A DNA stretch of 64,000 nt from Heteronotia binoei (Eukaryota), in contig NC_083240.1 of assembly GCF_032191835.1 (NCBI RefSeq), positions 13,764,001 through 13,828,000 of the forward strand, read 5' to 3'. A program made the position numbers and the translations under genes. Under the pieces are notes generated by a model, which was given only the letters and a program-made list of their open reading frames with translations, searched no databases and was not told the origin of the DNA. Below are positions 6,434-37,919 of the stretch, piece after piece (the first letter of the stretch is position 1; each line of letters opens with the position of its first letter).

Positions 6434-6558
6434 CACGCGGTGCCGGCCAGATGGCACGAGAGGCATCGGCCCTGCGATCAGGCACACGTCTTTTGTCCGC
6501 AGTTTAACACCGTGAATGGGGCCGACGTGTGGGAAACGGAGATTTGTGAGCTCACACC
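6434..6558 (+). promoter_or_regulatory. Candidate Notch-responsive enhancer module, copy 1
   Basis: CACGCG 6434, TGGCACGAG 6452, GGCACACGTCTTTTGTC 6481-6497, TGTGGGAA 6528-6535; CpG-rich, non-repeat context. Confidence 0.6.
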
Positions 6559-7406
6559 ATCTGAGGTGAATGGTGAACCAGGCACGGTGCCCCACAGCAG
6601 CCGTCCAAGGGAGGAGGGGCTGTTGCAGATTCCCAAGTTCTCTCCTACCTTCCCTCCTCCTTCAGTGCCCATCAAAGCAGCAAGGCCATTATTGAACATC
6701 TGCTGGAAGTTAATTCCTTAAAAACACACACACACACTCGTACCCAGAGGTGCCGGCTTTCAGGAGACTTCCAAAGCCTTTGAGCAGGAAGGTCTGCCTC
6801 TGAACTCCAGGGTCAGAAGAGCTGGCTGAGAATGCCAAAGGAAATTCACTCTGCATATGCTCAGAGACACTTTGTTATTTATTTCAAACACTCTAGGCTT
6901 TTAAAAAAAAATTAGGTTCAGCAGACTTAAATAGGTTCACCTTACAACTTCAGAGTTAGATCTGCGTGGCTGAATTGATGTAGTCACCACATTTATTAAC
7001 TAGAGTGGCATTTTATTCATTAGGAGATCCAGTTTTAATTGGTGGGGCACTTTTGAAAAAAAAGCTGTTTGACGGGGGAATAAGAAAAACACACAAGCCG
7101 TTCCTTCTACCGACGTGTGTGATAACTTTTTTTGTTTGACATTGCCTTAACACTAGCCTCTTGAAAAGGCACCTGTGGTAAAGTTGTCCATCATATCTTT
7201 GTTGTTCCAGGTGCTGTTTGCAGTCCCCCCCCTTCCCCATTTTATCTGCACAACAACCCTGTAAGGTAGATTAAGCTGTGAGTGATTAAAACAAAGGCCA
7301 CTCAGGGAACTTTGTGGCTGAGCCGAGGTTTTGGATTCAAGTCGTGCCCTAACATGAATGAGAAGCTAGCCTTAAACTTCCTACACTTTGGGAGATATTT
7401 ATATTT

Positions 7407-7484
7407 ATAATTTATATACATTTAAACATGGCTGGGTAAGTTATATATAACTTACCCAGCCATGTATAAATGTATATAAATTAT
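7407..7484. repeat. 78 bp loop-less palindrome
   Basis: 39 bp arms centred at 7445/7446, single mismatch (7425 vs 7466). Confidence 0.9.
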
Positions 7485-7523
7485 TTTCTACCCAATTGAC
7501 GTCACCTTATATTCTCCTTTAAA

Positions 7524-7821
7524 GAGCCCCGTGGCGCAGAGTGTTAAAGCTGCAGTATTGCAGTCCTAAGCTCTGCTCGCGACCTGAGTTCGATCCCTGG
7601 CAGAAGCTGGGTTTTCAGGTAGCCGGCTCGAGGTTGACTCAGCCTTCCATCCTTCCGAGGTTGGTAAAATGAGTACCCACCTTGCTGGAGGGAAAGTGTA
7701 GATGACTGGGGAAGGCAATGGCAAACTACCCCATAAAAAGTCTGCTATGAAAATGTTGTGAAAGCAACGTCACCCCGGAGTCGGAAACGACTGGTGCTTG
7801 CACAGGGGACCTTTCCTTTCC
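7524..7821 (+). mobile_element. Sauria SINE
   Basis: tRNA-like head, Bov-B-like tail GGGAAGGCAATGGCAAAC, flanking direct repeat TATATTCTCCT (7508-7518, 7822-7832). Confidence 0.85.
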
Positions 7822-8428
7822 TATATTCTCCTACAATGGTAAGAGTTTCTCTCCTCTCACTTTAAAAAAAAATGTAAGTAAGCCAGTATCCCTCATTTTA
7901 GTAGGATAGCCAATCCCCAGTTGGGGGCAGGGGATCCCCTGGTTTGGAGGCCCTTTCCTTGTTTCAGGGTTAGCAGGAAGTGTGGGGAGGAGCTGGCAAC
8001 CCTAATTTCTCTCAGCCTAGACTACCTCAAAGGACTGTTGTGAAGATAAAATGGAGCTGGAAAAAATCCCGCTGCAAGCCGTCTTGCTCCCCCACTGTTG
8101 AGAAAAGCAGATAAACGTCTAAAATAAATGAACACTCAGGTGTTATCTTCCAGCATCACCACACTAATGTAGGGTGCCAGGTCTGACTCAGGGAATATCT
8201 GGGGACTTTGAGGGTGGAGCCAGGAGCAAGGTTGTGACAAGCATGGTTGAACTCTGAAGGGAGATCTGGCCATCGCATTTCAAGGGACTGCATTTGTTTA
8301 AAATGCCTTCCCTCATTGGAAATAAAGCAGGATGGGGGCACCTTTGGGGGCTCATAGAATTGGACCTTCTCAGGAAACATTTCCCCCTTCTTAATGTTTT
8401 AAGCTCTATTTCACTCTTCATGAAGTCG

Positions 8429-8626
8429 NNNNNNNNNNNNNNNNNNNNNNNNNNNNNNNNNNNNNNNNNNNNNNNNNNNNNNNNNNNNNNNNNNNNNNNN
8501 NNNNNNNNNNNNNNNNNNNNNNNNNNNNNNNNNNNNNNNNNNNNNNNNNNNNNNNNNNNNNNNNNNNNNNNNNNNNNNNNNNNNNNNNNNNNNNNNNNNN
8601 NNNNNNNNNNNNNNNNNNNNNNNNNN
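8429..8626. other. Assembly gap (198 N)
   Basis: Run of N. Confidence 1.
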
Positions 8627-8995
8627 TCCATAATTTCCTCTTTGGCTTTCTGTTGAAATACCTCCTGTATTTGAAAGGCAATTATAAGGCAGAAGCACAA
8701 CATGCAAATAATACAGCTACAATTTCAAATTCTGGATTCCCCTCTCTCTCCCCCCCCCTCCCCGCTGCCACCACCTTTCCCTCCATTTCTAGACTTTGAA
8801 GAGGCCTTCCATTGAAGTGGGAAGCCCTCTTTGGTGTCAGAGAGCGTAACATTCCCAGCATTTTGAAAAGGCCCCGGGATAATGCGGATCGATCAATGTG
8901 GTCTCTCTGAGAAAGTGAACTGCTCCAGATGGTTTATCGGGACAGGAATTGCTGGTCACCACAATGGGGAGCCGCACAGCATCACTAATGGGAGC

Positions 8996-9083
8996 TGTAG
9001 CAGGGCACGCTTCTTTTGTCGCGCCCCTGAATGTCATCAATGGGCGAGAAAGTGTGGGAAACACCGAGAAAGCCAGCCCCACA
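8996..9083 (+). promoter_or_regulatory. Candidate Notch-responsive enhancer module, copy 2
   Basis: TGTAG-N3-GGCACGCTTCTTTTGTC (9004-9020), TGTGGGAA 9053-9060, partner GCCCCACA 9076-9083. Confidence 0.6.
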
Positions 9084-9386
9084 CTCTGAGGTTAATAGAA
9101 GCATTGTCTAGAGAGCCTCCCCGGGCCATGGGGTCAGCATAATAAACATCACCCCCAGGTCTGACTCCCTCGCTGGCTAAGGGACATCCACTGGGGTTTA
9201 AAGTCAAGATTTTTTTTTTTTTTTAAACATAGGCTGATTTAATAATACTTGAGTTCTGATATAAGATATATTAAACTTGCAAGCTTTCTATTGTCAGGAT
9301 ACGCATTTCTCCGCACTGACCTACCCAACAATTAACTCTCTCGAACAGAACTCCTGGATTCTGTGTTTACCCTTAGAACCCCAACT

Positions 9387-9602
9387 GAACATATGAACAT
9401 ATGAAGCTGCATTATACTGAAGCAGACCGTCAGTCCATCGAAGTCAGTATTGTCTACTCAGACTGGCAGTGGCTCTCCAGGGTCTCAAGCTGAGATTTTT
9501 CACACCTATTTGCCTGGACCCTTTTTTGGAGATGCCGGGGATTGAACCTGGGACCTTCTGCTTACCAAGCAGATGCTCTACCACTGAGCCACCGTCCTTC
9601 CC
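9387..9602 (-). mobile_element. tRNA-derived SINE with (CATATGTT)n tail (Squam2-like, name tentative)
   Basis: A box GGCTCAGTGG and B box GGTTCAATCC; matching copies at 32163-32384 and 61469-61673. Confidence 0.8.
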
Positions 9603-9632
9603 AAATGATCCTTTTAAAAAATTATTTACAGC

Positions 9633-9859
9633 ATTGGTATTATTCTTATCCTCACTCTGCAATTGGCAGGATGGAGGCTAAGCTAGAGTGGTTTGCTAAA
9701 GGCCATGAGTTCATGGTAGAAACAAAATTCAGACTAGGAATCTTTCTGGCACTTCTGCAGGCTAGTTTAATAGTTGTCTCAGCTTAATATGGAATCCTGG
9801 GGAATGTAGTCCTGAGAGAAAAGCTAGGGAATGGAGTATTCTCAGCTTCTTCACCGTAC
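9633..9859. repeat. ~226 bp repeat, inverted relative to 549-774
   Basis: Reverse-complement match to 549-774. Confidence 0.85.
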
Positions 9860-10026
9860 CTCACAGCGAAAGGAGATTGTAAACCACTCAGAGATTGAAG
9901 GATGGGGTATACATTCAGTCTCTTCTCCTCAAGATGAATCAAGGCCCCACCATTTGCTGTTTATAAAGAAAAAGCGCCAATCAGCTCCAGCGAGAAAATC
10001 CCCTTCGCCACTAAATAAATCAGATT

Positions 10027-10240
10027 TAGGGTTGCCAGCCTCCAGGTGGGGCCTGGAGATCTCCCGCTTTTATAACCTCCAGCTGGTAGCGATCAGCTCC
10101 CCTGGAGAAAATGGCTGCTTTGAAGGGTGGACTCTAGGGCATTGGACCCTGCTGAGGCCCCTCCCCTCCTCAAAACCTGCCCTCTCCTGGATCCAGCCCC
10201 AAAGCCTCCGGGTATTTTCCAACACAGACCTGACAACCAG
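10027..10240. mobile_element. hAT-like MITE, TAGGGTTGCCA family, short form
   Basis: TAGGGTTGCCA start and degenerate TGACAACC end; shared body CCCCTGGAGAAAATGGCTGCTTTG seen in many copies. Confidence 0.7.
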
Positions 10241-10420
10241 GCCTCAGATTCAGCAGGAGCTCCCAGGAGCACAGCTCCTGAACCTTTCTGAGAGTTCCCC
10301 CTCTTCCTCCCCACAAACCTTGTCCATTGAATAGTAGGTGCAGCTGCATAACAATCCCTGGATTAGGAGAGCAGGCAGCCAGCCAGCTACCAGGAGCTTT
10401 GCCACGCCCCCAGCAGCCCT
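10241..10420. repeat. Unclassified interspersed repeat
   Basis: GCCTCAGATTCAG...GTGCAGCTGCATAACAATCCCTGGAT also present at about 56525-56670. Confidence 0.7.
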
Positions 10421-10900
10421 CATTAACCTCTGGAGAAGCCCGTGCCACCCTTTCTCCACTTTTTATGTGATTTTGGGCAGCGGGTGGCTTGCAACTTCAA
10501 CAGGAGCCAGTTTTTAGAAACTGTAATTGGCTCTTCTTCAGCTTTTACAGTTGGTTAATTTATCCCTGCCAGCCTCCGAGGAGCACACTGCGCAGGCGCT
10601 GTCCGCTTTCGCGTCTCCCGGGTCTGTAACAGACCCGAGGAACACGAAACCGGCCAGGCAGCATCTGCGCTCCATGGAGCGAAGGCAGGAGCCAAGGAGC
10701 ACACACGCTGCACGTGGGGAGAGTAGGAGGCGCCCTAGGCGGCCACCTACTTGGCCTACTCCCATGCACCGGCCATGTGTATAAAGTTGATCTATTCACA
10801 CTGGTGGTTCCCCAGGTCGCTAAACTCAGCCATAGAAATGTGTCTTCAGACCACTTGCGGGGGAAGGGAGGGGACTGCAACTCGTCTGTTCAATCATCAA

Positions 10901-11097
10901 CAGGGCTTTTTTTTTGTAGCAGGAACTCCTTTACATATTAGGCCAAACACCCCTGATGTTTTTCAGAGGCAATGAGAGACCAACTGTTTACAGGGCTCTA
11001 AGTATAGGAGCCACTGTAAGCTCCAGGAGGACTGGCTACATCAGGGAGGTGTGGCCAAATATGCAAAGGAGTTCCTGCTACCAAAAAAAGAGCCCTG
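10901..11097. mobile_element. Palindromic hAT MITE, family A
   Basis: CAGGGCTTTT...AGCCCTG fold-back. Confidence 0.8.
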
Positions 11098-11451
11098 ACC
11101 GACATCATCCTGAGAGTTTTAAAAGCAGCCTTGTGTTCACGTTTCTGGTCTGTAAAATGTACTGATCTGGGATTAAAGAAGTAGTTTTTCTCCCCTCCTT
11201 TCCCTTTGGAGTCAATTTAATATGGAGGTTTGAATACCACTCAAGGGAGCCAAACCTCTGGTCTCAATTGCGCCAGGGTATGCCCAGCCTTACCACCTAC
11301 CGTGACCTAAGGCTGTTGATTCTGATTGGTCACGATTCAAACCTTTATGAGCTATGCTCCATCTCCGAGCCGGTAAGTGATGTGTCAGACAGATCCAATT
11401 TTCTTAGCTGCAGGAACACATTCAAGATTGCTCAAGATATGTGACCATGTG

Positions 11452-11545
11452 AGTCTGTCTGTAGCAGTAGAAAAGAGCAAGAGTCCAGCAGCACCTTAAA
11501 GACTAACAACATTTGTGGCCGGGAAGGAGCTTCTGTGAGTCACTG
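11452..11545 (-). mobile_element. Penelope-like element terminal fragment, truncated by a SINE
   Basis: GAGTCCAGCAGCACCTTAAAGACTAAC motif shared with the 34210 and 52590 fragments; partial hammerhead remnant. Confidence 0.6.
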
Positions 11546-11816
11546 AATAGATTGAATTTATATCCCACCCTCCATTCCAAATCTCAGAGTGGCTCACAAT
11601 CTTCTTTATCTTCCTCCCCCTGTGAGGTGGGTGGGGCTGAGAGAGCTCTTCCAGAAGCTGCCCTTTCAAGGACAACTCCTATGAGAGGTATGGCTGACCC
11701 AAGGCCATTCCAGCAGCTGCAAGTGGAGGAGTGGGGGACTCAAACCCAGTTCTCCCAGATAAGAGTCTGTGCACTTCACCACTGCACCAAACTGGCTCTC
11801 CACACCAAACTGGCTC
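11546..11816 (-). mobile_element. tRNA-derived SINE, Squam3-like (name tentative)
   Basis: Matches the ~280 bp consensus AGCCAGTTTGGTGTAGTGG...GGCGGGATATAAATCC repeated more than 10 times in the window. Confidence 0.85.
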
Positions 11817-12204
11817 ATGTAAAGTATTCCTCCTACATTCTCCCACCTGTCCGTCCAGCATCCTGTCCATCCCACCCGTCCAACAACAAATCTCTGGATT
11901 GCAGAGGAGAAAACTTCGGGGAGAAATTGGCTTCTTGAAGACCACCAGTTGTGTTTATGGCTGAGGAGGCATTGGAACTATGGACTTCTCCAGCTCCCAC
12001 ACTACCCTAGACCTCATCTTTGCACCTATTGTGGCCCTTTTAAATTAGAGGTGGCCAAGGATTGTTCCCTCATAATAACTTGCAGGATTCCCCATTGACA
12101 TTCCCATTTCAGATCAGAAAAATGGCATTGGAAGGCAAGCTGATGCCCCTTTGTCATCTGTACCATGGTCCCAATTCAAACTGGGCACTGAATGCACAGG
12201 AATT

Positions 12205-12389
12205 AAGAACATAAGAGAAGCCATGTTGGATCAGGCCAATGGCCCCTCCAATCCAACACTCTGTGTCACATAAGAACATAAGAGAAGCCATGTTGGATCA
12301 GGCCAATGGCCCATCCAGTCCAACACTCTGTGTCACACAGTGGCAAAAAAAACCCAGGTGCCATCAGGAGGTCCATCAGTGGGGCCAGT
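12205..12389 (-). mobile_element. CR1-like 3' end with ~65 bp tandem duplication
   Basis: AAGAACATAAGAGAAGCCATGTTGGATCAGGCC occurs twice in tandem. Confidence 0.7.
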
Positions 12390-13414
12390 GGGTATAACTC
12401 ATACTTGCTACACAGACCGGGGACCCCAGATCTAACTTGTGTACTCTGTAATGTCTGAACTGTCATTCGTAAAGCCACTGTAGCAGTGGTGAAATTTGAG
12501 CTTCCTGTCTCACTCACACCAAGTTCTGTAAGGAAATATTCATTCATGGACAAAATAATAATAATAATAATAAATGAGAATCTTTTTATTGGCATTTCCA
12601 TCCAAGAAATTCAAATGGTATTCAACATCACAAGTGATGAATGCACAATATCTTTTATTCCTTTCTTTTAAAAAGCATCGCACATAGTTCATCTACGTAC
12701 CCTCAGTTCTTTCTCCTTATTAAAGATACCCAGGCAACCGTTTCCTTTACAAAAGGCATTGACATCTCTCTCAAATGAGAGAAGCACACAGATGCAACAA
12801 AACCTAACTGAAATGGCCCAATACGTTATCATAATAACTTTTAAAAGTTCATCTACAAACGTAGTACAGGATTCTCAGTAACATAGCTACTGTTCAGGAG
12901 GCAAAGGGGTTCACGCAAAAGGTTAAAAAAAAAAATAGACTACAGCACTTTTAATACAAAACTACATCATCAAAAATAGCCCTTCTCTTGGAAGGACAAC
13001 CTGAACAGAGAGCCAGTGCTGATCTTCAACCCTTTGGATCCTCAGCACCTTCAGTGCTGTACCTCTCGGATACCAGAGAGACATCTTTTGAGCAACACTG
13101 TGGCTGCAGATAATTCTGGGGTTTTGTTTTGCATTCTGCACAGGAACAAAGACACTGGCTGTCTGTCACGGTCACCCATTAAGGGTGGACTTTATCCACT
13201 CTGCGAAAAGCAGGCACGATCCTTCATTGTGAAGGGAAATTACATTAGCCGGCTTTCTCTTTGCAGAAAAAACAACCGCATTCTCCTTCTCCCCCACCTC
13301 CTGGAAATCAAAAGGTTTCCTACTTAAGAAAGAGGAATCCTAAAACCAAAGATTCCTCTAGTATATATATATATATTTTTGTAGACAGCTATCAGGAAAG
13401 TCCATCAGTGGTCT

Positions 13415-15637
13415 CTACCACGGTCTCCAGATGGTCACTGCAGCTGGTGGGTTCTTGTGGGCAGGGTGTTTCTTGGGAAGAGGGTGAAGAGGCACAGGTG
13501 GGCAGCCTAGGGCCGGAGCGGGTGGGCGCGTGTGGTCGGCAATGACGTGGACTTTGCAGAAGTGCTTGATCAGCCGGCTCTGGGTTTCCCTCTTGGGTTC
13601 ACAATAGGAGAGGAAATTAAACGTTTCCCTCAAGCAACGCAAGTACCCGGTGTTGAAGTCGAGTTCTGGATTCTTCTGGCCGAAAGCTAGAGAAAAGAGA
13701 AAATTTGCAAAAAAGAAAGAAAGTCAGCAGTAGGCACATGCAAATCCCACAGTGATCTGAGAGTCTTTATCGTTGCATTAGATAGCAATCCAATCCTCCC
13801 TCTATAGGGCAACATGTTGATTCCCACTGGTTATCTTCACAAGAAACCTGTGAGGTTGAACGAGAGAGCGACGGGGCCAAAAATACTCAGTGAACTGCAT
13901 GGCTGAGTAAGGACTCTAAATCCAAGTCTCTAAATCTGACTTTCTACCAATGTTCCCTCTGAGCTGAGTTAGTGTGAGCTAGCTCACAGTTTTTTAGCAT
14001 CTGGCTCACACATTTTTGTCTTAGCTCAGGAAAAATGGCCCCAGAGCAAACTAATTTATGCAGTAGCTCACAGCTTTAATGCTAGTCGCTCACAAAGTAG
14101 AATTTTTGCTCGCAAGACTCCACAGGTTAGAGGGAATATTGCCTTCTACCCTTTCGCTATACAAATGAGCTCGTTTTACATATTAGGCAGGGTAAACTGA
14201 CGGTCTGCCAGTCCTGACACTCTGATCTGTATGTGGACAGGATTGTTTCATCCTATATTTTTCTGTGCACACCTAATGTACTGAAAGGTCAACCCAAGTG
14301 ACCTAACCAGAACACAAAATCTTAAAGCAGCAAGAGCCTCACTCAGCTTGCATGCAGATGCCTTTAGGGGCCTGTTGACCACTAAACTTGCAAGAAAAGT
14401 CCTGTCTATCTGAGACTGCAGGAGCTTTCTCTCTCCTTACCTTGGCCCTGAGCTTGACGCTGCTGTTTCAGGTAACTGACAGCCACTTCCAAGATGTCAG
14501 CTTTCTCCAGCTTGGAGTTGGGCTGGTGTCTCTGGAACTCCTTCTCCAGCAAGACCTTCAGCTGCTCGATGCTGCTGTTAATGCGGTCGCGGCGCATCTT
14601 CTCCACCACTGGCTTTCTCAGCTGTTGAGGAGAAAGAATACAAGGTCAGCCTGCAGGAATGGGAAAGAACTTGCAGTGCAAAGTTTTTCCGGTAACCCAA
14701 ATCCCATTCTTCCCCTCTCCCATCTTCTGTTCCAACATTTAACAGAATTTCCAGATGTCTACATTGAGACGCAGCTGTCAAGGACACAACAGATGTCTCG
14801 CCCCCTGATATATCTCTGACTAATCTCTTGCCTCTCTCATGCCCCTTGGTCACAGAATTCCCATCCATCCATCTAGCTAGCTAATCTTTTTTTTCTTTCT
14901 TAAAAACACATGCATACACAACTGCTTGTTTGATTCAAGCTAACCCCAGCCCCTGTTCTGACACCCTTCCTTTCTATCATTCTCAGAACTTGTCATTTTA
15001 AGACCTGGTTAACACATCCCTGTTGAGTTCTTGATGCCTCTACATTCCTGGCATTGGAACATGTGAACGCACTTCCCTGGAAAGCAGTGTGAGACCCGTT
15101 CACACCTGCAAGTCCTCATCCTCAAATGATGAACAAGCCGGTATGAAACTGGGATGCTTTCACACGGAAGGTGCATTCACACGACACTAAATAATGTTTT
15201 ACATCCAGATTTTTGCTATTCTTACACAGTAAAAATCTGGATGTAAAACGCATTATTTAGTGTAGTGTGAATGCACCAACAGTGAATAATGCATTTTCAA
15301 TCCACTTCAAATGCCCTTTTTGCAACTGGATTTTACTTTCTGCAATGGCCAAACCTGCCTCCACACAATGCTAAACCGTACTGAAACTGCATTATTCAGA
15401 ATGTGCGATTATGCTTTCGAATACACTTTGCAACTGGGTCGTACTGTGTGCAATGGCAAAGTCTGCTTGCAAACAGTCACAAAAGAGCATCAAAAGTGGA
15501 CCAAAAGCATGGGTGAGCCCACCCTGAAAGCGGTGCGTGTCTGCTGCTTCTCTGAAGCTCTGCCTTACCTTGTTCTTCTCTTTTGCCAACAGCCTCTCCT
15601 CCTCCATGTGGACCATACAGCTGTTGCTGGGAGCCAT
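13415..15637 (-). CDS. HES5: HES5 paralogue 2, 173 aa; complement(join(13415..13686,14441..14621,15569..15637))
   Basis: Exon 1 [23 protein letters not shown]; exon 2 [54 protein letters not shown]; exon 3 [17 protein letters not shown], Pro-rich tail, WRPW-stop. GT-AG introns, phases 0 and 1. Confidence 0.95.
13948..14141. mobile_element. hAT-type MITE in intron 2 of HES5 paralogue 2
   Basis: TIR CAATGTTCCCTCT / AGAGGGAATATTG; TSD CTTTCTAC/CCTTCTAC. Partial copies near 31490-31690 and 42283-42465. Confidence 0.8.
15170..15277. mobile_element. Harbinger-like fold-back MITE nested in a second Harbinger-like MITE, intron 1 of paralogue 2
   Basis: GGTGCATTCACAC / GTGTGAATGCACC ends with ~45 bp arms. 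Host element starts GGGATGCTTTCACAC at 15151 and resembles 41687-41817. Confidence 0.7.
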
Positions 15638-15738
15638 CCTTAACCCAATTGGCTAGGCAGTCAGACAGAGCTGGATGTCAGCTGCTCCGAGCTTAACCCG
15701 AGCGCCACCCTTATGCCCCAGATCCTTCCAAGAGCCTC

Positions 15739-15876
15739 TATTTATATCTGCAAGCGGCTTAGCAGTTACGTGAGTTTCCAGCTTCTCAGTGTTTCCCACA
15801 GTCGCGCAGCCAATCCGGGCCTGCGGTCAGATAATAAAGCATCTCTCTTTAGTACACGCTACATTGACTGTCAATG
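15739..15876 (-). promoter_or_regulatory. HES5 paralogue 2 promoter
   Basis: TATAAATA 15739-15746; RBPJ TGTGGGAA 15793-15800 with partner CGTGAGTT 15769-15776; CCAAT 15810-15814; CpG-rich. Confidence 0.85.
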
Positions 15877-16303
15877 CCCCAGAGAGAATAACCTTCTGCC
15901 TGTACCAACTGGTGCAGCGCGCAAAGCTGCACGACGGGCCCGTGGGAGGAATCTGGGAAAGCCTTGCCCCTCCAGATGCTTTGCAGGGGATCAATTACAT
16001 TCCTAAACCGCTATCCTGTGCCACTCCTGCTCACAGTTAAAGATGCTGGGGGGGGGCAGGGGCGTGGGAGAGAAGGCATAAGGAAGGAATAAGGTGCAGG
16101 ATGGTGGAAGGCGGGCGGGGAGAACCCAGCAGCGCCCCCAAAAGATCTGTGTCTATTCATCCCGCAGTCCCACTAAAAGAGATCACAGCACCCAAGCAAT
16201 CAGATTGAGAAGACAAACAGTGGAACAGAGTCCAAACATGGCAAAACGCCACACATTGTTTATTATTATTATTCCACCACATCCCAGCCAATGCCAGACT
16301 CTA

Positions 16304-24276: not shown

Positions 24277-24474
24277 NNNNNNNNNNNNNNNNNNNNNNNN
24301 NNNNNNNNNNNNNNNNNNNNNNNNNNNNNNNNNNNNNNNNNNNNNNNNNNNNNNNNNNNNNNNNNNNNNNNNNNNNNNNNNNNNNNNNNNNNNNNNNNNN
24401 NNNNNNNNNNNNNNNNNNNNNNNNNNNNNNNNNNNNNNNNNNNNNNNNNNNNNNNNNNNNNNNNNNNNNNNNNN
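24277..24474. other. Assembly gap (198 N)
   Basis: Run of N. Confidence 1.
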
Positions 24475-25189
24475 GTCCAAATGACAGAGCAGACTATCTG
24501 TTAAAATAATAATGGCTTTTTGTACAGATTATGCTTGGACAGAAGCCATTTCACCCCTTTTCTTTGGTTCCCATTTTGAGGGATCATTTAATTTTTTTAA
24601 AAAAAATTGGCAATGCTAGAGAATCAACGTTGCCTGCCTTCATCTTGTATACTTTTTAAAAAATCTCCATGAAAGCTCAAAGTAGTCCTGAGATGATTCG
24701 CTTCTCAGCTTTCCCACAAAATAGAGGGGAAGGAATAAAGGCCTCTGCGGCCAACATCTGTCTTGAACAAAGAGATAAGCCCATTCAGACCCACACAATG
24801 AATACTATGGGGCTGGCTCTTTCCCTGACCCCTTTCCCTTCCTGACAACGGCCTGTTAAAGAACAGCAATCGCTTTAGTCTTCCCCCCCCTAAATTAGAA
24901 AGTGGTCCCAGGGCTTGTTGAATGATAACTTCAGGGTTCCCTCCAGCCTTCTGTTACTTGGCCTCTCAGCATCATTGAAGTTTGGGCCTAAAATGGGTGT
25001 CGAGGCCTAGGGCTTTAAGCCTAGAGTTAGGATTGTCAGATTCTAGAAAGAGCCTGGAGTTCTCCCAGAATTACAACAAAGATAAGCTCTCCTGGAACTA
25101 AGGATGCCAACTCCAGGTTGGGAAATTCCTGGAGATACAGAGGCAGCAATTGAGGAGGGGAGGGCTGCCAAATCCTCCTAGGCTACCAG

Positions 25190-26311: not shown

Positions 26312-26547
26312 GTGATTGGGATCTTCCGAGGAAGAAATCAGAGACTGACAGCTAGCTCAGTGATGGAGCTGGTTAAAGAGACTCAGGTGGTGTCAAAGAG
26401 CGTGTCTCTCCCACCTTCGGAGTGGCAGCCCCCTGACCCTCTTTGCTGGATGGCAACTACTAACCAGATGGTCTTTTGGGAGTTGGACTTTTCCCCTCGA
26501 ATGCATTGAGGCTCAAGGAGTGTCGCTAATGTAGCCCGTAGTCACAA

Positions 26548-26614
26548 GGCACGCTTCTATTGTCCGAGTGTGGAGGGGGACAGTGTGGGAAACTCAGTGG
26601 AATTCAAACCCACA
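26548..26614 (+). promoter_or_regulatory. Candidate Notch-responsive enhancer module, copy 3
   Basis: GGCACGCTTCTATTGTC 26548-26564, TGTGGGAA 26584-26591, partner AACCCACA 26607-26614. Confidence 0.6.
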
Positions 26615-28189
26615 CAGCCTGGTGCTAATAACTCTTTTGTAGGGATTGCACTTCTAACAATATGCCGTGAACTCACGTGGTTCCCTCAGCCTGGGCTGGA
26701 AAAAATGCAAGGGAAACAGACATTTTCTCAGGCACCCTCCTTTACCAAGAGGGGAATCAAAGAGACGAGCATAAGGCGAAAGCAGACTTCGCTAATGAAA
26801 GACGAAGCTTGGAATTCAGTAGATTAATAGGACCAAAGATATTTCCATCTGCGGTTTCTGGTTTTTCATTCCACCTGTTCTGATCTGAAAATTCTATTCT
26901 GGTTGTGGTTTTTCACCATTTCCAGTTCCCTCGCAGCACATATCATCTATAAAATGTACACAATTAAACATTGCTTGTGCACTAATATATTGGCCTTTTA
27001 AATCCCGTACACCGTTCTGGACTTAGTTTGTCAGCGTGAAGATCAAAACATCTGCATAGAAGGGCCATGTGTGGATAGAGGAGGTTTTTCTACAAGAAGA
27101 AGAACTGCAGATTCATACCCCGCCCTTCTCTCTGAATCAGAGACTCAGAGTGGCCTACAATCTCCCATATCTTCTCTCTCCACAACAGACATCAGGGGGT
27201 GTGGCCTAATATGCAAATGAGTTCCTGCTGGGCTTTTTCTACAAAAATAGCCCTGCAAGCAAACGGTTGTCATTTTGGAGTTGCTAGGCAACACATAATG
27301 CCAACAGAAAGAAAGGTAGGGAACAGATGAAACACAGGAAGGGGAATGAAAAGTAAAGCTTGCAATGAAACTTGCAGCAGAAGATCTATGGTGGGAAGAA
27401 AGTGCATGTCATTGGGTGAGGTAGAAAAGTGCAGATGTGAAAAAGAAAAGAAAAAAGAATGGTGCATAACTGAGCGGGAGGGGGGAAGTGTGCAAGGGGG
27501 GTCTGGATGGGAGAACCAGTGTAACAGGGGAGCAAGGGCCAGTGGAGGTTCCTGTTTCCCCTTCTCCATGACTCTTTGTGGGTCTCTAGCTTGTTATATG
27601 CATTAAAGCATGCATAGTTTATATTTTTAATGCAGTACAGTACACATAGAAAATGCAAACAAATCTACAAACCCAACAGCAAGGAGTAGAGAATTGAAGT
27701 TGTTTGCAAACATATAAATGGAAACAAAACAGAGATCGTTTGCTCATCTCTAGATCCAAAGGAAGTCCCCCGCTACTAACATGAGATGGGCTCACCCAGT
27801 CCAAGAAGCCACGCCCTCAGTGTGCAAGACCTGAGCAAGGCTGTCAATGAGAGGATGTTTGGAGGTTTTTTTGTTCATAGCATAACGGTCACTATAAGTT
27901 GGGAGTGACTTAATGACACACACACACACATCACTAATGAATACAATGTGTGAGTGCAACAGGATTTTAAAAAAAATAAAAAATGGCCTTTCTTTCTCAC
28001 AAACTGAATGATGCTTTCCACATGGCTCTCCTGTTCATGGAGAAAAGTAAGAAGAATTATAGACCATCTTCCTTCCCTGCCCACCGCACAGGCCTGTCCC
28101 TCTACCAATGCTCCTGCACGTACCCACTGAAGATTTTACTTGGGGGTGGTATTTTTATTGTGTGTGTGTGTGTGTGTGTGTACATGTAC

Positions 28190-28413
28190 ACACACACACC
28201 TGGAAGTCCACACCTGGAAGTCATGGTGACCTCTGGTGATTGATCCCTACTGGGGACATGGAAGATATTCAGAGAAGTGACTGGATAAAGCCTGGCCCTG
28301 GCTCCCAGCTCTGGTATTCCTTGGTGGTCTCCCATCCAAGTACTTGCCAGAGTTGACCCTGTTTAGTTTCTGAGATCTGATGAGATCAGGCTAGCCTGGG
28401 CTATCCAGGTCAG
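28190..28413 (-). mobile_element. 5S rRNA-derived SINE, uninterrupted copy
   Basis: Minus strand GCCTGATCTCATCAGATCTCAGAAACTAAACAGGGTC...GTACTTGGATGGGAGACC matches the 5S rRNA internal promoter region; tail has repeated TTCCAGGTG plus dinucleotide repeats. Confidence 0.8.
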
Positions 28414-30419: not shown

Positions 30420-30760
30420 TCGCCTTTGCTCTCTCACTCGTGGAAATTCCCACAAGTCCTCTCTATCCGGCACACAAGAGGGATTTATTATTTCCTGGTT
30501 TATTGACTCTGAAAGGCCCGGGGGATTATGGCTGCTTTGCACATGAATTGCCGGAGTGTGTTGTACAAAAGTCCAGGGCTGTGGGATAATGTATTTGGAT
30601 GTGGGAAAGAGCTGACCCTCCGGGGAAGCAGACTGGTGCCTGATGGTAAGAATCAATTACGTTTCAAAAGAACACGTTGCCCTGGGCGCAAAGGCTGGGC
30701 TCGGCCAACACAGTCAGGAAGGAGGGAAATCCCTCCCCGGATCCGTGCCTTCTCCTGCTG
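30420..30760. promoter_or_regulatory. Candidate enhancer with clustered RBPJ, N-box and SOX-like motifs
   Basis: TTCCCACA 30447-30454, TGTGGGAA 30600-30607, CACAAG twice, ACAAAAG, GCTGTGGGATAAT 30578-30590; unique CpG-containing sequence. Confidence 0.45.
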
Positions 30761-30772
30761 TATGATGTATGC

Positions 30773-30835: not shown

Positions 30836-30859
30836 TGCCTGAAATTTAATTATTATTAG

Positions 30860-31154: not shown

Positions 31155-31761
31155 ATTATTAGTAGGCTTGAACAGACCTAAGGAATCTAGCCATCTGGTT
31201 TTACTGCTGTTATACTGTAGGTTGTAAATTGTTTTATGGTTTGATGAAACTGATGTATATGTTCTTATGCTGCTACCTGCCCTTAGCCTGCCTTGGTGGA
31301 ATGGGCAGGAGATAAATCCCCAAATTAAATTAAATTCTTTCCACATTGTTCCTTCCACTAGCTTGCAGAAAAGAAAGAAAGATTACACGCACATAGAAAT
31401 TATGTTTCTGAAAGTGCTGTTCTAAGCAGAATTACACCCTTTTTGAAGTCAAAGGTATAATCACAGTGCAGTTCTAAACAGTCACACCCAGTGTTCCCTC
31501 TAAGCTGAGTTGTGCGAGCTAGCTCACAGGTTTTTAGCCTCCAGCTCACAGGTTTTTGCCTTGGCTCAGGAAGGATGAGCCCAGAGCACAATGATTTATG
31601 CAGTCGCTCACAGCTTTAATGTCAGTAGCTCAGAACTTTAATACCAGTAGCTCATAAAGTAGAATTTTTGCTCACAAGAATTTTAGCTCACATTAACTTC
31701 AGTTAGGGTTTACCCACCTCAAGCAGAGACCTGGAGATCTCCTGGAATTACAGCTGGTTAC

Positions 31762-31927
31762 TATGTTTGGAGAGGATGTTGTGACACTTCTGGGTCAAAC
31801 TGTAGGCTTCCTTCCCCAGTCTCTGTGATCTTTACCATAGAGATCAGGGGAAATTCCTAGAGCATCACTATGTAGAGGCCATTATTTTCTTCTGTTCCTC
31901 AATTCCTTAGGGGTGCAAAATGGGTTT
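31762..31927 (+). repeat. 166 bp direct duplicate of 29716-29881, inside a MITE
   Basis: Near-identical by eye (2 mismatches seen); flanked by the two halves of a TAGGGTTGCCA-family MITE (about 31703-32037). Confidence 0.85.
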
Positions 31928-32162
31928 CCCTGGAGAAAAGACATGCTTTGGAGGCTGGATTCTATGATATTATACCCCTTCTGAAGTCCCTCCCCCCAAA
32001 TCTCCAGGTATTTCCCAACCTGGAGTTGGTAACCCTAACTTCAGTGTATTTAGAAGGCTGTCGTTCTGTTCAGGATTGCACTGTGTGTGAGAGTCTCTTT
32101 CTGCACCTTTGAAGTTTCTCTTACTGCAATGAAACACTATCAAAGACATTGCCTCTACCCAC

Positions 32163-32384
32163 ACATATGAACATATGAAGCTGCCTTCTACTGAATCAGA
32201 CCCCCCTCGGTCCATCAAAGTCAGTATTGTCTACTCAGAAAACTGGCAGTGGCTCTCCAGGGTCTCAAGCTGAGGTTTATTATGGCTATTTGCCTGGACC
32301 CTTTTTAGTTGGAGATGCTGGGGATTGAACCTGGGACCTTTTGCTTACCAAGCAGATGCTCTACCACTGAGCCACCGTCCCTCC
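32163..32384 (-). mobile_element. tRNA-derived SINE (Squam2-like)
   Basis: Matches 9387-9602. Confidence 0.8.
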
Positions 32385-32716
32385 CTCTTCCACACAGCAC
32401 ATTACTATCCCACCCTTCTTCCAAAGCAATAGTTGGTCTTCCATTTTATCCTCACAACAACCTTATCAGGCAGATTAACCTGAGTGAGAATGAGCAACTC
32501 GAGGTGATGATGATGATTTACAAAATATATACCTCTTGCCTCAGGGGGATGACCCAGCAAGCTTCAAGCAAGAACAGCGAGAATTTGAACCCGACTCTCC
32601 GCTTTCCCCACACCCGACACAAACTACTAAGCCATCCACTCAAGAGATCCATTTTCCAGAGATTTAATAAAAGTCTGAATAGACAATGTTGGGATAGGCA
32701 GGCCAATAAGAAGCTA

Positions 32717-33022
32717 TGAATAGCCCTGCTGAATCAGGCCAGTGGTCCATCTCGTCCAGCATCCTGTCTCATGCAGTGGCCAACCAGTTCATCTGGATGG
32801 TCAACAGCAGGGCAAAGAGAGCAAGGCTTTCATAGGAACATCAGAAGAGCCCTGCTGGATCAGACCAGTGGTCCATCTCATCCAGCATCCTGTCTCACAC
32901 AGTGGCCAACTGGTTCCTCTGGATAGCCAACAACAGGGCATAGAGGTCTTCCCCTGAAGTTCCCTCCCAGCTCTGGGATTCAGAGAATGACTGCCTCTGA
33001 ACATGGAAGTTCCCTTTAGTCA
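32717..33022 (-). mobile_element. CR1-like 3' region with internal duplication, interrupted by a SINE
   Basis: GCCCTGCTGGATCAG.CCAGTGGTCCATCTC.TCCAGCATCCTGTCTC occurs twice; resumes at about 33300. Confidence 0.6.
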
Positions 33023-33299
33023 CTAGTTTGGTATAGTGGTTAAGTGTGTGGACTCTTATCTGGGAGAACCTGGTTTGATTCCCCACTCCTCCACTTGTAC
33101 CTGCTGGAATGACCTTGGGTCAGCCATAGCTTTCACAGGAGTTGTCCTTGAAAGGGCAGCTTCTGTGAGAGCTCTCTCAGCCCCACCTACCTCACAGGTG
33201 TTTGTTTTGGGGAAGGAAGGTAAAGGAGATTGTGAGCCGCTCTGAGACTTTGTTTCAGAGTGGAGGGCGGGATACAAATCCAATATCTTCTCTTCTTCT
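33023..33299 (+). mobile_element. Squam3-like SINE, full length
   Basis: Consensus match. Confidence 0.85.
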
Positions 33300-33794
33300 G
33301 CTATGGCTAGTAGCCACTGATAGGCCTCTCTTCCACAAATCTATCTAATAATGCCTTGGTTCACTACAAGGCGGTGTCATGTGTTCACATGTTCAAGATC
33401 TTACACTTGGCCATGTTTGATCCCATTCTCCACCTATCGCTTGTCTCGTTCCGGTTATCCTAGTTTTTGAGGTAACCAATGAGCCTGGAACACCAGCTTT
33501 ATGTGTTTGGATGCTGCCTGAAACCTTTAAAAAGCTCTGAGACTGTTAAACTGTCAATGGGCCTTTTTTCTTCTTCCTCCCTGACTGCCCCCAGCCTCCC
33601 CAGCCAGATGTTAAGCCCTCAAGAGAGAGAAAGGAATTACTTTCCCAAGTCTCTCAGCCTGCCTTGACAGCCCATGATCAACGGCTCTTCCCCCCACCAC
33701 CGCCACAAACAGTAAATGCTATGCAGATGGTCTCCCCAAAGCTCAGCTTTGCCCCACACACAAAAGAAAGTCAAATACCATTTCTAATTCAAGT

Positions 33795-33883
33795 TGTAGC
33801 CTGGCACACTTCCTTTCTCCTCAGACTTCAATGCCTTGAATAGGGACGCAGTGTGGGAAACTCAAACCAACCCGACACTCACA
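33795..33883 (+). promoter_or_regulatory. Candidate Notch-responsive enhancer module, copy 4
   Basis: TGTAG-N3-GGCACACTTCCTTTCTC (33803-33819), TGTGGGAA 33852-33859, partner CACTCACA 33876-33883 at 16 nt. Confidence 0.55.
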
Positions 33884-34204
33884 GACCTGGCCTCAACTCC
33901 ACATCTGCCTGTGGCCAACAGACACAGAGTGAGGAGGGGGGAAAACCCCAGATTAAATGAGAGTAGGAAGGGGGGGAGAGAGAGCTGTAGAAAGAGCGGG
34001 AAGCCATTGGTAACAATGGAAATGAACCTGCAAAGACAAGAAAGTATATGTGTGGGGGGGGGGAATTTTTTTAAACATCCTTTATTGCCCAGAACCTTTG
34101 GAACACCTTTCCTGTGAGGAAAGGCTAGAGAGAGAGGGGCTTTTCAGTCTAGAAAAAAAGGTGGCTAAGATGGAGACAGGACTAGAGTTTTATAAATTCA
34201 GGTG

Positions 34205-34350
34205 AGTAACAGTGTTGGTCTGAAACAATTGAACAAAGTTTGAGTCCAGTGGCACCTTTAAGACCAACCAAGTTTAATTCTGGGTATATCTAACAAAGTT
34301 TAATTCTGGGTATAAGCTTCCGTGTGCATGCACACTTCTTCAGATACAAA
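34205..34350 (-). mobile_element. Penelope-like terminal fragment with mutated hammerhead (34310-34347)
   Basis: Minus strand GTAT-CTGAAGA-A-GTGTGC-AT-GCACAC-GGAA-GCTT-ATAC. Confidence 0.7.
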
Positions 34351-34689
34351 TTATGCATAGGGTAGAGAGAGGGCTGCCAAGCTCCTGCTAGGGGGGTGGG
34401 GGATCCCCCAGTTTGGAGTGCCACAATCCACTGGCATGGATCAGGCTGCTGGGGGGATCCCTGCCCCCAAAGAGCCCTGTCACAACACAATGTGCCCTGT
34501 GTGATGATGTCACCCAGATGTGATGTCATCGTGCCGGGCATGTCATGCCAGGGATGCTCTAGGATTTGCAGTAAAACTCTATGGTACCTTGGAGTTTTAT
34601 CATGAATCCCAGAGTATCCCCAGCATGCCCTAGGTAGAGAAAGTAAATAGAGGGAGCTTTCTGTCCCTCCCCCCCCCAATAGTAGTAGT

Positions 34690-34958
34690 AGAAGAAGAAG
34701 ATATTGGATTTATATCCCGCCCTCCACTCCGAAGAGTCTCAGAGCGGCTCACAATCTCCTTTACCTTCTTCCCCCACAACAGACACCCTGTGAGGTGGGT
34801 GGGGCTGGAGAGGGCTCTCACAGCAGCTGCCCTTTCAAGGACAACCTCTGCCAGAGCTATGGCTGACCCAAGGCCATACTAGCAGGTGCAAGTGGAGGAG
34901 TGGGGAATCAAACCCAGATAAGAGTCCGCACACTTAACCACTACACCAAACTGGCTCT
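34690..34958 (-). mobile_element. Squam3-like SINE, full length
   Basis: Consensus match. Confidence 0.85.
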
Positions 34959-36253
34959 AGTAGAACTTGAAGGGGTGGAGGTGGAGCCCAACAAAGTTGC
35001 TGGGTAATAGATATAGGACAGATCAAAGGTAATAATTCTTTACTCAAAGAGTAATTAAAATGTGGAATTTACAGAAAGTGAAGGTAGTGATAACCACAAG
35101 CATGCTTGAAAAGGGGGTTAATCTCTTCATTCTAAATTGGTAGTTATCTTATTCATAACTAAAGGGAGGTCTGAAGGAAAACTTGGGTCGGGAATCTACA
35201 GGCTCAAAAGTCTTTCATCTGCTGTCTTTGCCCAAGAAAGCACAAAAGGCTCAAGCTCGGTTATGGTTCCCAAGTCCCCCGCTGCCTCTGTACCATAGAG
35301 TTTCCCCTCCCAAATCGCCAGAGTGTCTGGGAAAACTTCCAGGTGATGCCATAATGTTGGGGGAGGCTCCCCCCGCTGGCCCAGTGTGGGCCGGTGGGTT
35401 GGGAACCTCCAGGGTGGGAGAACCTCCAGGGTGGGAGAACTCGGCAGCCCTAAGCTTGGTCCATTTTAAAAGATCAGGAAGAAAATCCTAACCTAGCAGG
35501 AAAAATCTGGATTTCACCACAGCTTTCCATGCTGACAAGGATAAATGGAACCAAGACCAGCCAAGGGGTTAGTCAGATTCATGGAGGAGAGGTCCATCAA
35601 TGGCTATGAGCTATGGTGACTGAAAGGAGCCTAAATATACAGAGGCAGCAAAACTCTGAATTCCAGTGCCAGGAGGCAGTTGCCAGAGATGGTCTCCCTC
35701 GCAGTGCCTGTTTCTTGGCCTGCCAGGACAAACTGCTTCCATAGTCCTCCCATTTTATCCTCAAAACAACCCTGTGAGGTAGGGTAGGCTGAGGGTGTGT
35801 AACTGGCCTAAGTTCACCCAGCAAGCTTCCATGGTACTAGCGCAGATTTGAATCTGGGTCACTCAGATACGAGTCTGACACTCTTAACCACTACACTACC
35901 ACTGGTGCTTAGCCCTTCTTCACAAAGAAAAGTCTTTTCTGGTCAGGTTTCCATATATTCATATAAAATCATAGAATCATAGAGTTGGAAGGGACCTCCA
36001 GGGTCATCTAGTCCAACCTCCTGCACAATGCTGAGAGCTCCAGAAATTAGGGCACGTAAGCACTTGGTTCTGTGTGGGCTTCTTGCTGATGGATAACAGG
36101 CACAGCTAGGAATTCAGGACAACATCTATGGCTCTTCTCCATTTTGTTCAACAAGTGTGTGAAGCAGGTTAAGCTAGGATGGAGTTATTTACCTCAGTAT
36201 GCCCAGTGAACTTCCCTGGCTCTTAGTCCAACATTAAGCACTACACCACAATG

Positions 36254-36763
36254 TAGGGTTGCCAAGTCCAATTCAAGAAATATCTGGGGACTTTGGGGGT
36301 GGAGCCAGGAGACATTAGGGGTGGAGCCAAGATCAAGGCTGTGACAAGCATAATTGAACTCCAAAGGGAATTCTGGCCATCACATTTAAAGGGACGGCAC
36401 ACCTTTTCAATTCTTTCCTTCCATAGGAAATCATGAAGGATAGGGGCACCTTCTTTTGGGGCTCATAGAATTGGACCCCCTGGTCGAATCTTTTTGAAAC
36501 CTGGGGGGTATTTGGGGGAGAGGTACTAGACGCTATACTGAAAATTTGGTGCCTCTACCCCAAAAAACAGCACCCCCCAGAGCCCCAGATACCCGCGGAT
36601 CAATTCTCCATGATTTTCTATGGGAATAAATCTCCATAGGGAATAATAGAGTTTCCCAGCAGACATTTTCCTCCCCTCCCCCCGCTTTCTGACGACCCTG
36701 AAGCGGGGGGAGGGCCTCCAAACCAGGGGATCCCCTGCCCCCACCTGGGCATTGGCAACCCTA
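36254..36763. mobile_element. hAT-type non-autonomous element, 510 bp
   Basis: TIRs TAGGGTTGCCAA / TTGGCAACCCTA; perfect 8 bp TSD CCACAATG. Confidence 0.9.
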
Positions 36764-37299
36764 CCACAATGGCACTCCATCTTGTTAGCTTTTCGTCGGC
36801 AAAGTGGTATAGCTATAATCACAATGTCCTCCTTTTTTATTGATTTACTTCATTTATATACCCTTCCTCTCTCCACAGTGAGGAGGGCCCTAAACAGCTC
36901 ACATTGTTTTCTTCTCCATTTTATCCTCACAACAACCCTGTGAGGTGGGTTAAGTTGGGAGTGTGTGACTGGCCCAAGGTCAACCAGCAAGCTTCCATGG
37001 CACAAGTGGGGATTCGAACCTTGGTTTCCCAGATCCTAGTCAGACACTCTAACCACTACACCACTAGAATCTAAAGAGTTACAAGTAGGCCAGAACATGC
37101 TTTGAATACCCTGCAATGCTGTATGAATCAGTAGCAGATCTCTCATGCTGAGACACATCTAGTGGACGACTGTCCAGGATCTGAGCCACAGAAAGGCATT
37201 TCTCACTACTTGAAGTCATTTAATTAGAAATGGCAGGGAGAGAAAGTGGCTGAGAAAATGTCTTTCCTGTTTGGGGGTATTTTTGTATTTTTTTTAACA

Positions 37300-37679
37300 C
37301 ACACATGTTTGTGCACCTGGAAATCATGGTGACCTGTGGTGGCTTACTGGGGGCATGGAGGATATTCAGAGAGATTTTATTTATTTATTTATTTGGGATT
37401 TATATCCCGCCCTTCCCACAAGTGGCTCAGGGCGGCTTCCAGTGATAGATCCAACAAAATTACAATATTTAAACATATAAAGGGATCAGCATTTAAACAG
37501 ATAAAAACAGATAAAACCATGATTATCAATAAATATTAATAAATGGCCAAATAAAGCCTGCCCCTGCCTCCCGGCTCTGGTATTCCAAGGAAGTCTCCCA
37601 TCCAAGTACTTGCCAGAGTTGGCCATGCTTAGCTTCCAAGACCTGATGAGATAGGGCTTGCCTGGGCTATCCAGGTCAA
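37300..37679 (-). mobile_element. 5S rRNA-derived SINE interrupted by an L2-like 3' tail (about 37374-37546)
   Basis: Two halves match 28190-28413; the insert ends AGCCGCCCTGAGCC...GGCGGGATATAAAT on the minus strand. Confidence 0.7.
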
Positions 37680-37858
37680 GGCTGAAAACGTCCCTGGGTC
37701 CAACGGTCCAACTCTGAGCAAGAGAGTTTTGTACCTCCTCCTCCTCCTCCTCAAAAAAAAAAAAGCTCAGATATTCAGAGCTCTCCCTGCCACCCCAGAA
37801 GGCACATGGCTAAGTAGCTTATTACTACATGGCAAAGGGAGTTCAAAAACCTCAGAGG

Positions 37859-37919
37859 TTCCCACAGCATTTTCTTAATGCCATTCATCCCCTCCACAAT
37901 GGACGTGTGCCTGCCTACA
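37859..37919 (-). promoter_or_regulatory. Candidate Notch-responsive enhancer module, copy 5 (inverted)
   Basis: Minus strand TGTAG-N3-GGCACACGTCCATTGTG (37911->37895), then TGTGGGAA (37866->37859). Confidence 0.55.

Follow-up and report, generated by a model that had tools for sequence, protein, structure and literature searches.

Why does the intergenic DNA of a HES5 gene cluster carry one short arrangement of motifs five times over? The question is raised by a 64,000-nucleotide stretch of the genome of the gecko Heteronotia binoei (contig NC_083240.1, positions 13,764,001 to 13,828,000; hereafter the window, with positions counted from its first letter), which contains three intact three-exon HES5-type genes, HES5-A, HES5-B and HES5-C, all with a WRPW end. 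The five sites, here termed modules c1 to c5, are distributed among the genes in the layout A(-) c1(+) c2(+) B(-) c3(+) c4(+) c5(-) C(+). Widely used Notch reporters are based on HES5, a principal effector of the pathway, yet the distal regulation of HES5 has so far been known from essentially a single element, Hes5(e1), which now takes its place as one of five ancient paralogues with a conserved grammar. In the reading that we favor with considerable confidence, the modules are five conserved non-coding paralogues of ~220 bp, which most likely serve the HES5 cluster as distal enhancers and combine Notch with neural basic helix-loop-helix (bHLH) input.

Five sites with a common architecture

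A first-pass annotation of the window had described a 17-mer followed by TGTGGGAA at five sites, and all of its positions and gaps hold. The 16-base core of this 17-mer, GGCACRCNTCNNTTNT, has exactly five matches in the window, at 6481, 9004, 26548 and 33803 on the plus strand and at 37911 on the minus strand, against 0.03 expected from dinucleotide shuffles, none of which (0/100) reached five. Downstream of each core, after gaps of 30, 32, 19, 32 and 28 nt in c1 to c5, respectively, stands the RBPJ 8-mer TGTGGGAA (at 6528, 9053, 26584, 33852 and, on the minus strand, 37866-37859), which occurs 13 times in the window as compared with 4.15 expected.

Alignment of the five sites with their flanks extends the similarity to a span of ~220-270 bp, well beyond the extent given in the annotation. 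The blocks in common are, from upstream to downstream, the E-box CCAGATGGTCT, ACAAT/ACAAAG, CTAATG, TTGTAG, the 17-mer, TGAATG...AAT, AGTGTGGGAAAC, a reverse-oriented C(C/T)CACAC and GTTAATA(A/G). The upstream E-box, CCAGATGG, is a shared block absent from the annotation's list, and in c1 it lies ~45 nt closer to the core than in the other modules. Two finer resemblances reported earlier are present as described, namely TGTAG-N3 before three of the copies (c2, c4 and c5) and the exact 16-mer CAGTGTGGGAAACTCA common to c3 and c4. Across the 28 module copies of the cross-species comparison given below, both GGCACRC (position -36 to -51) and CAGATG (position -119 to -132; -80 to -88 in c1) are kept in every copy, and TGTGGGAA is kept in 27, the single exception being TATGGGAA in c3 of the ptarmigan Lagopus muta. 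Depending on the copy, the GGCACRC block appears HES-, PAX- or ETS-like.

Module c1 (6382..6604, plus strand; nhmmer E = 3e-33) carries the E-box GCCAGATGGCA, GGCACACGTCTTTTGTC, the RBPJ 8-mer and, beyond it, a reverse partner site, GCTCACAC. It is embedded in a conserved block (6036-7093), of which ~150 bp are nearly invariant across four geckos, and its orthologues are found at 3687-3800 of the Lagopus locus (L009) and at 6892-6790 of the elephant locus (L011). Module c2 (8905..9132, plus strand; E = 2e-50) comprises CCAGATGGTTT, CTAATG, GGCACGCTTCTTTTGTC, the 8-mer, the partner CCCCACAC and then TTAATAGAAGC; it lies in a conserved block (8627-9363) and has orthologues in three geckos, and the Lagopus orthologue (L009 4809-5124) is 80% identical over 323 bp. 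Module c3 (26439..26660, plus strand) contains CCAGATGGTCTTTTGGGAG at 26464-26482, GGCACGCTTCTATTGTC, the 8-mer, the partner ACCCACAC and then GCTAATAAC. Module c4 (33699..33919, plus strand; E = 3e-43) contains GCAGATGGTCT, TTCTAATT, TGGCACACTTCCTTTCTC, the 8-mer and the partner ACTCACA. Module c5 (37785..38006, minus strand; E = 1e-46), which is inverted relative to c1-c4, has CCAGATGGTCT, an upstream TTTCCCAC, GCTAATG, GGCACACGTCCATTGTG, the 8-mer, a weak partner and then GTAATAAGC.

Conservation across species

The HES5 loci of ten other species, obtained via their proteins, were scanned with the module profiles, the scan totalling ~300 kb of HES5 loci from 12 species. Most of these loci span part of the cluster only, and a copy that is not listed for a species is usually out of range, not demonstrably absent. 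Strong matches (E = 1e-19 to 1e-50) are located solely at syntenic intergenic positions of HES5. Among the geckos, Paroedura picta, where the cluster is fully covered, has all five modules, Gekko kuhli has c1, c2, c4 and c5, Sphaerodactylus townsendi has c1 and c2, and Eublepharis macularius has c5. The lizard Anolis carolinensis likewise has c5, and the hawksbill turtle and the gharial each have c4 and c5. Lagopus, represented by the entire cluster in one locus, has c1-c5 in the same order and orientation as in the gecko. In the elephant, c1 is found 3.1 kb upstream of HES5 in divergent orientation (E = 2e-19). The annotation had named many unlinked profile matches, and copies that are not conserved, as grounds against its reading; within the ~300 kb the matches are indeed confined to HES5 intergenic regions, and the copies are strongly conserved.

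An unbiased blastn comparison between gecko and bird returns nothing beyond the exons, the promoters of the three genes, all five modules and another three blocks (x1-x3, described below). The modules are 73-81% identical in this comparison, versus 67.5% for exon 3 of HES5-A.

Paralogy and age

In a maximum-likelihood tree of the 28 module copies and 16 promoters, each module forms its own cross-species clade (100/99 for c1, elephant included, 92/100 for c2, 99/99 for c3, 100/99 for c4 and 97/92 for c5), c3 and c5 are sisters (94/92), and the modules stand apart from all promoters (100/97). The topology identifies the five sites as the cores of true paralogues that derive from duplication of one ancestral module. 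Because each copy forms its own cross-species clade, the tree places all five in the sauropsid ancestor; c1 and c3 are traced further back, to the amniote ancestor, and both persist beside the single mammalian Hes5. Duplications that predate the sauropsid ancestor exclude both chance and a recent transposon as the source of the modules. Chance co-occurrence of the five sites is ruled out by the shuffle counts and by the profile matches across species as well as by the tree.

Module c3 is the known enhancer Hes5(e1)

As described by Sagner et al. (2018, PLoS Biol, PMC5811045), Hes5(e1) is an element of ~200 bp that lies inside the chick HES5 cluster and 5' of mammalian Hes5, coincides with an RBPJ chromatin immunoprecipitation peak, and activates reporters in the neural tube of the chick and of transgenic mice. 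Its E-box is bound by Olig2, Ngn2 and E12 in the mouse and chick work reported there; full activity depends on this E-box, and so does the Olig2-dependent exclusion of the element from motor-neuron progenitors. The mouse electrophoretic mobility shift probe for Hes5(e1) has a 19-nt core, CCAGATGGTCTTTTGGGAG, with an exact match at c3 only (26464-26482 in the window, as well as in Paroedura and Lagopus). The chick e1 primers, with one mismatch each, map to L009 10442-10461 and 10707-10726, flanking c3 between HES5-B and HES5-C of Lagopus. Because the probe 19-mer is unique to c3 and the primers bracket Lagopus c3, these published oligonucleotides identify c3 as the Hes5(e1) enhancer.

The likeness of c2, c4 and c5 to Hes5(e1) consists of the overall layout and an 11-nt E-box core, CCAGATGG(T/C)CT; since only this core is shared, they are paralogues and not e1 itself. 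Together with c1 they represent loci distinct from Hes5(e1), each with its own orthology group. The CAGATGG E-box, the functionally tested site of Hes5(e1), is the most informative of the shared blocks. The annotation was not aware of a description of the array; for c3 one exists. In its accessible text, the Hes5(e1) paper presents a single, E-box-defined element and makes no mention of paralogous copies, of GGCACRC or of a paired RBPJ architecture (PMC5811045), and a literature search, in which not every journal was covered, returned nothing on the remaining four copies, on their paralogy or on a promoter-like grammar. Modules c1, c2, c4 and c5 add four members, which appear to be undescribed, to a known type of enhancer.

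We note that at L009 10707-10726 the galliform c3 has TATGGGAA in place of TGTGGGAA, and that the published chick e1 forward primer sits on this RBPJ site of Lagopus c3 and carries the same variant. Because primer and galliform c3 both have TATGGGAA and not TGTGGGAA, the chick element tested in the publication may have a weaker Notch input than the copies of other species.

Paired RBPJ sites and a proposed mechanism

A sequence-paired site (SPS) comprises head-to-head RBPJ sites with a 16-nt gap, of which 15-17 nt are tolerated in vitro, and one partner may be cryptic (Crow et al. 2020, PMC7685452). In c2, c3 and c4, the forward TGTGGGAA is accompanied by a reverse partner, the same in all species, that agrees with TTCYCACR at 6-7 of 8 positions. 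The spacer is 15 nt in c2 and c3 and 16 nt in c4; in the three gecko HES5 promoters it is 16 nt, and in elephant c1 it is 15 nt. As judged from their letters, c2-c4 fit the published definition of an SPS with a cryptic partner. Like the Notch SPS of the HES1 and HES5 promoters, they combine a high-affinity TGTGGGAA with a reverse cryptic partner at 15-16 nt; the SPS of the mammalian Hes5 promoter has 16 nt, which is exactly the spacing in the gecko HES5 promoters as well. Unlike these promoter pairs, the modules are distal and are not accompanied by a TATA box.

The arrangement suggests how the modules might work. RBPJ would occupy the invariant, high-affinity TGTGGGAA, where complexes of NICD and MAML would form on Notch activation, and in c2-c4 a second complex would probably be recruited, in the manner of an SPS, to the reverse cryptic partner 15-16 nt away. 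By homology to Hes5(e1), the CAGATGG E-box would receive activating dimers of proneural and E-proteins and, in motor-neuron progenitors, the repressing Olig2. SOX-type input would arrive at the SOX-like CYWTTGT, and this site together with GGCACRC, CTAATG and TGAATG would supply progenitor-specific inputs. Five copies with one grammar could then act additively or redundantly on three promoters that have the same RBPJ pair. The E-boxes differ systematically between the two classes: against the CAGATG of all 28 modules, the A- and C-type promoters all have CACCTG, and the B-type promoters have CAGTTG or CAGCTG. On account of the systematic difference between CAGATG and CACCTG, distal modules and proximal promoters may read different bHLH factors.

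Several observations weigh against the enhancer reading. The spacer of gecko c1 is 13 nt, outside the 15-17 range, and the partner of c5 is weak (4-6 of 8 positions) with a spacer of 17-18 nt, in which respects both modules also depart from the promoter SPS. The annotation had assigned a cryptic partner at 15-16 nt to four copies, which is borne out for c4, at 16 nt, and for c2 and c3, both at 15 nt. Even the isolated pair of the Hes5 promoter showed no dimer dependence in the reporter assays of Crow et al. (PMC7685452). Enhancer activity and factor binding have been demonstrated for c3 alone, in mouse and chick (PMC5811045); for c1, c2, c4 and c5 we infer an enhancer role from paralogy and conservation. 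The proposal of the annotation that the modules form a serially duplicated, redundant array of Notch-input enhancers is a reasonable reading, because they are true paralogues and conserved elements of unique sequence, carry RBPJ, SOX-like and GGCACRC sites, and include one validated enhancer.

Relation to the HES5 promoters

The promoter of HES5-A (2700..2920, minus strand) carries a CACCTG E-box, CTATTGT, GATTGGC (a CCAAT box), TGTGGGAA at 2771-2764, a cryptic partner at 16 nt and TATAAATA. The promoter of HES5-B (15729..15932, minus strand) has TGTGGGAA at 15800-15793, the partner ACTCACG at 16 nt and TATAAATA, and that of HES5-C (42765..42984, plus strand) has CACCTG, GCTTCTTCTATTGTG, GATTGGC, TGTGGGAA at 42911, the partner ACCCACA at 16 nt and TATAAATA. 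In HES5 promoters the TATA-type box lies ~55 nt past the RBPJ site, with exon 1 (MAP...KEKN) beyond it. Each of the 15 promoters examined from sauropsids has CTATTGT, GATTGGC, TGTGGGAA, the 16-nt spacer, CCCACA or CTCAC, and a box of the TATAAATA/CATAAATA type; the elephant promoter is a GC-rich, divergent form of the same layout with TATATCA at the TATA position.

Three promoter-like details noted earlier are borne out: CTATTGT stands ~30 nt before TGTGGGAA in promoters A and C; GATTGGC in the same two promoters corresponds to GAATGG, CAATGG or GAATAG in the modules; and TTAATAGAAGC of c2 resembles the TATA context, where promoter A has ATAAATAGAAGC. After the modules themselves, the next-best matches of the module profile are always promoters, on the gene strand and collinear (best, promoter A, E = 1e-3). 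Conversely, a promoter-only profile matches promoter A at E = 3e-60 and next c2, x2, c4 and c3 (E = 4e-5 to 4e-4); its match to c1 is weak, and it has none to c5. When the RBPJ 8-mer is masked, the similarity between modules and promoters falls to E = 0.05-2.4, and what remains, in four species, is marginal and confined to the region around the E-box of promoter A (E = 0.05-0.8). Because masking leaves so marginal a similarity, the resemblance is one of shared motif order and spacing, and common descent from a promoter is possible. The earlier statement that the modules resemble the HES5 promoter core thus stands for motif order and spacing, and is marginal once the RBPJ site is masked.

These comparisons bear on the origin of the modules, which the annotation had sought in promoters of lost HES5 copies. 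The cluster holds more genes of the hes5/her4 type in amphibians and teleosts than in amniotes, which counts in favor of such a past. So does the common layout, in which an E-box (about -115 to -130) is followed by a SOX-like site (about -30 to -45), by GAATGG where the promoters have GATTGG, by TGTGGGAAA, by the reverse partner after 15-16 nt and, close to the position of the TATA box, by TAATA(A/G). The two profiles, moreover, each pick the other class as next-best, on the correct strand and in collinear order. Still, a tblastn search of the window and the 11 other loci (12 species) for the peptides of every exon returned the annotated genes only and no exon remnant downstream of a module. 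TATAAA was found in no module of any species, only TAATA(A/G) or GAATGG, and the TAATA block lies ~12 nt nearer to the RBPJ site than the promoter TATA box does. The 28 modules are a single clade apart from the 16 promoters, and GGCACRC, CTAATG and CAGATG (not CACCTG) occur in no promoter. Because the masked similarity is marginal, convergence on one motif grammar is possible. We therefore do not follow the annotation on this point, and regard it as unlikely that promoters of lost HES5-type genes were exapted as enhancers for the surviving genes. A more specific version, in which the five modules would be the surviving promoters of an extinct Hes5/ESR-type subfamily, lost in stem amniotes and kept for >300 million years as enhancers, seems to us equally doubtful. 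If true, it would mean gene death and promoter-to-enhancer exaptation five times in one cluster, an idea that can now be tested against anamniote Hes5 clusters.

Possible transcription start sites and repeats

A promoter-like layout could also mean that the modules are active promoters, or promoters of alternative first exons, from which unannotated transcripts start, either non-coding or of HES5. Conservation does continue past the modules in the downstream direction, for ~500 bp at c1 and ~230 bp at c2, and the Lagopus annotation holds an alternative first exon of HES5-C, 8 kb upstream of the main promoter. That exon, however, lies upstream of c3, so that c3 is intronic to the alternative transcript. 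In the blocks around c1 and c2 neither a conserved open reading frame nor, in the modules, a TATA box was found, and the indel lengths are not multiples of three. In addition, c3 acts position-independently on a heterologous promoter (PMC5811045). RNA was examined with one raw RNA-seq run from the same species (~3% of it read) and three contig sets over 1400-7300 of the window. The depth is zero on c1 and on the exons of HES5-A alike, the tissue evidently being one without HES5 expression, and reads fall only on interspersed repeats (3764-6127), where 96% run on into unrelated sequence. Because HES5-A itself has zero depth, these data say nothing about transcription of the modules. On balance we consider it quite improbable that the modules are transcription start sites, and distal enhancers the better account of them.

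Five dispersed and similar copies, one of them inverted, might also be expected of an ancient family of transposable elements that had inserted five times in the locus, and the profile scan spans only the ~300 kb of HES5 loci. Yet terminal repeats, target-site duplications and tails are seen at none of the modules, as the annotation had already remarked; the strong profile matches in the 12 species are all syntenic within the HES5 cluster; and, in the tree, all copies are older than the sauropsid ancestor. The c1 block drew no reads, in contrast to the adjacent interspersed repeats with depths of hundreds to thousands. The window does contain tRNA-like and 5S-like heads of short interspersed elements (SINEs) recognized by Rfam, none of which overlaps a module. 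An ancient exapted element is formally possible as the source, but we give almost no weight to the modules being relics of five insertions.

With regard to the repeats themselves, 3764-6127 and 10021-11097 are ordinary interspersed repeats; each recurs several times in the window and many times in other gecko loci, and both draw RNA-seq reads that originate at other places in the genome. Matches above the Rfam gathering score to tRNA-like or 5S-rRNA-like families occur at 9527-9597, 32310-32381, 28303-28409 and 37569-37675, all on the minus strand, and are most likely the heads of tRNA- and 5S-derived SINEs. The Rfam scan of the window returned no structured RNA in any module; the match at 37569-37675 is ~110 nt from c5.

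Genes, assembly gaps and neighboring elements

HES5-A (1457..2636, minus strand) has exons at 2636-2577, 2455-2291 and 1678-1457 and is 99% identical to Heteronotia binoei HES-5. HES5-B (13418..15637, minus strand) has the ATG of exon 1 at 15637, exon 2 at 14621-14460 and exon 3 at 13660-13418. HES5-C (43061..44335, plus strand), with exons at 43061-43126, 43474-43638 and 44138-44335, is 96% identical to Heteronotia HES-5-like. Two assembly gaps, gap 1 (8429-8626) and gap 2 (24277-24474), leave the modules untouched. In Gekko kuhli the sequences that border gap 1 lie ~44 nt from each other on one strand and in collinear order, which gives no indication of a misjoin. Gap 2 is bordered on the left by a multi-copy repeat, which allows no check of continuity there; on its right side, x1-c3-c4-c5-gene C follow one another as in Paroedura.

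Element x1 (24674..24860), located ~200 nt to the right of gap 2, contains TTTCCCACA, a CATCTG E-box, AACAAAG, CCATTC and ACCCACAC, which is the vocabulary of the modules in a different order. It is 73% identical in Lagopus and 82% in Paroedura. Its orientation in Paroedura is that of the window, and in the ptarmigan it is inverted, which implies a small inversion in one lineage. Element x2 (30443..30690) has TTCCCACA at 30447-30454, then TGTGGGAT and, 20 nt later, TGTGGGAA at 30600-30607, along with CAGCTG, a SOX-like site, TTGTACAAAAG and AATCAATTA, and is 83% identical in ptarmigan and 88% in gharial. It is not matched by the module profile and is not collinear with the modules; the promoter profile matches it on the minus strand (E = 1e-4). 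Element x2 is a very strongly conserved, non-paralogous element and probably another Notch-input enhancer. A short block, x3 (40480-40562), lies ~2.5 kb upstream of HES5-C and shows 77-86% identity in bird, turtle, gharial and Anolis. Of the 13 copies of TGTGGGAA, all but two, at 37413-37420 and 58667-58674 on the minus strand, belong to a promoter, a module or x1/x2. In Lagopus, the alternative first coding exon annotated at L009 10001-10048 (MPEDLEVETAEG...) is spliced to exon 2 of HES5-C. As it is located just upstream of x1 and c3, transcription in the bird may start in the intergenic region.

Comparison with known systems

The four modules beyond c3 are candidate elements for the missing Notch and proneural input to HES5, and the five spacers (13, 15, 15, 16 and 17-18 nt) form a natural series in which the spacing of paired RBPJ sites and the strength of the partner can be dissected. 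The nearest parallel in layout is the 'SPS + A' code of the Drosophila E(spl) complex, where paired Su(H)/RBPJ sites and a proneural bHLH E-box are repeated across duplicated HES-type genes. Like the fly code, the gecko modules reiterate paired sites and an E-box across a HES-type cluster. The fly code, however, resides in proximal promoters, with a GCAGGTG-type site close to the pair, whereas the gecko code is found in stand-alone intergenic modules with a CAGATG-type E-box ~120 nt away, and there is no sequence homology between the two. With shadow or redundant enhancers the modules have in common that several elements of the same input logic serve one locus. They differ in that their redundancy, which for function is a prediction, stems from demonstrable duplication and has been kept since before the sauropsid ancestor, so that the HES5 cluster offers a clean case of the origin of redundant enhancers by duplication and long retention.

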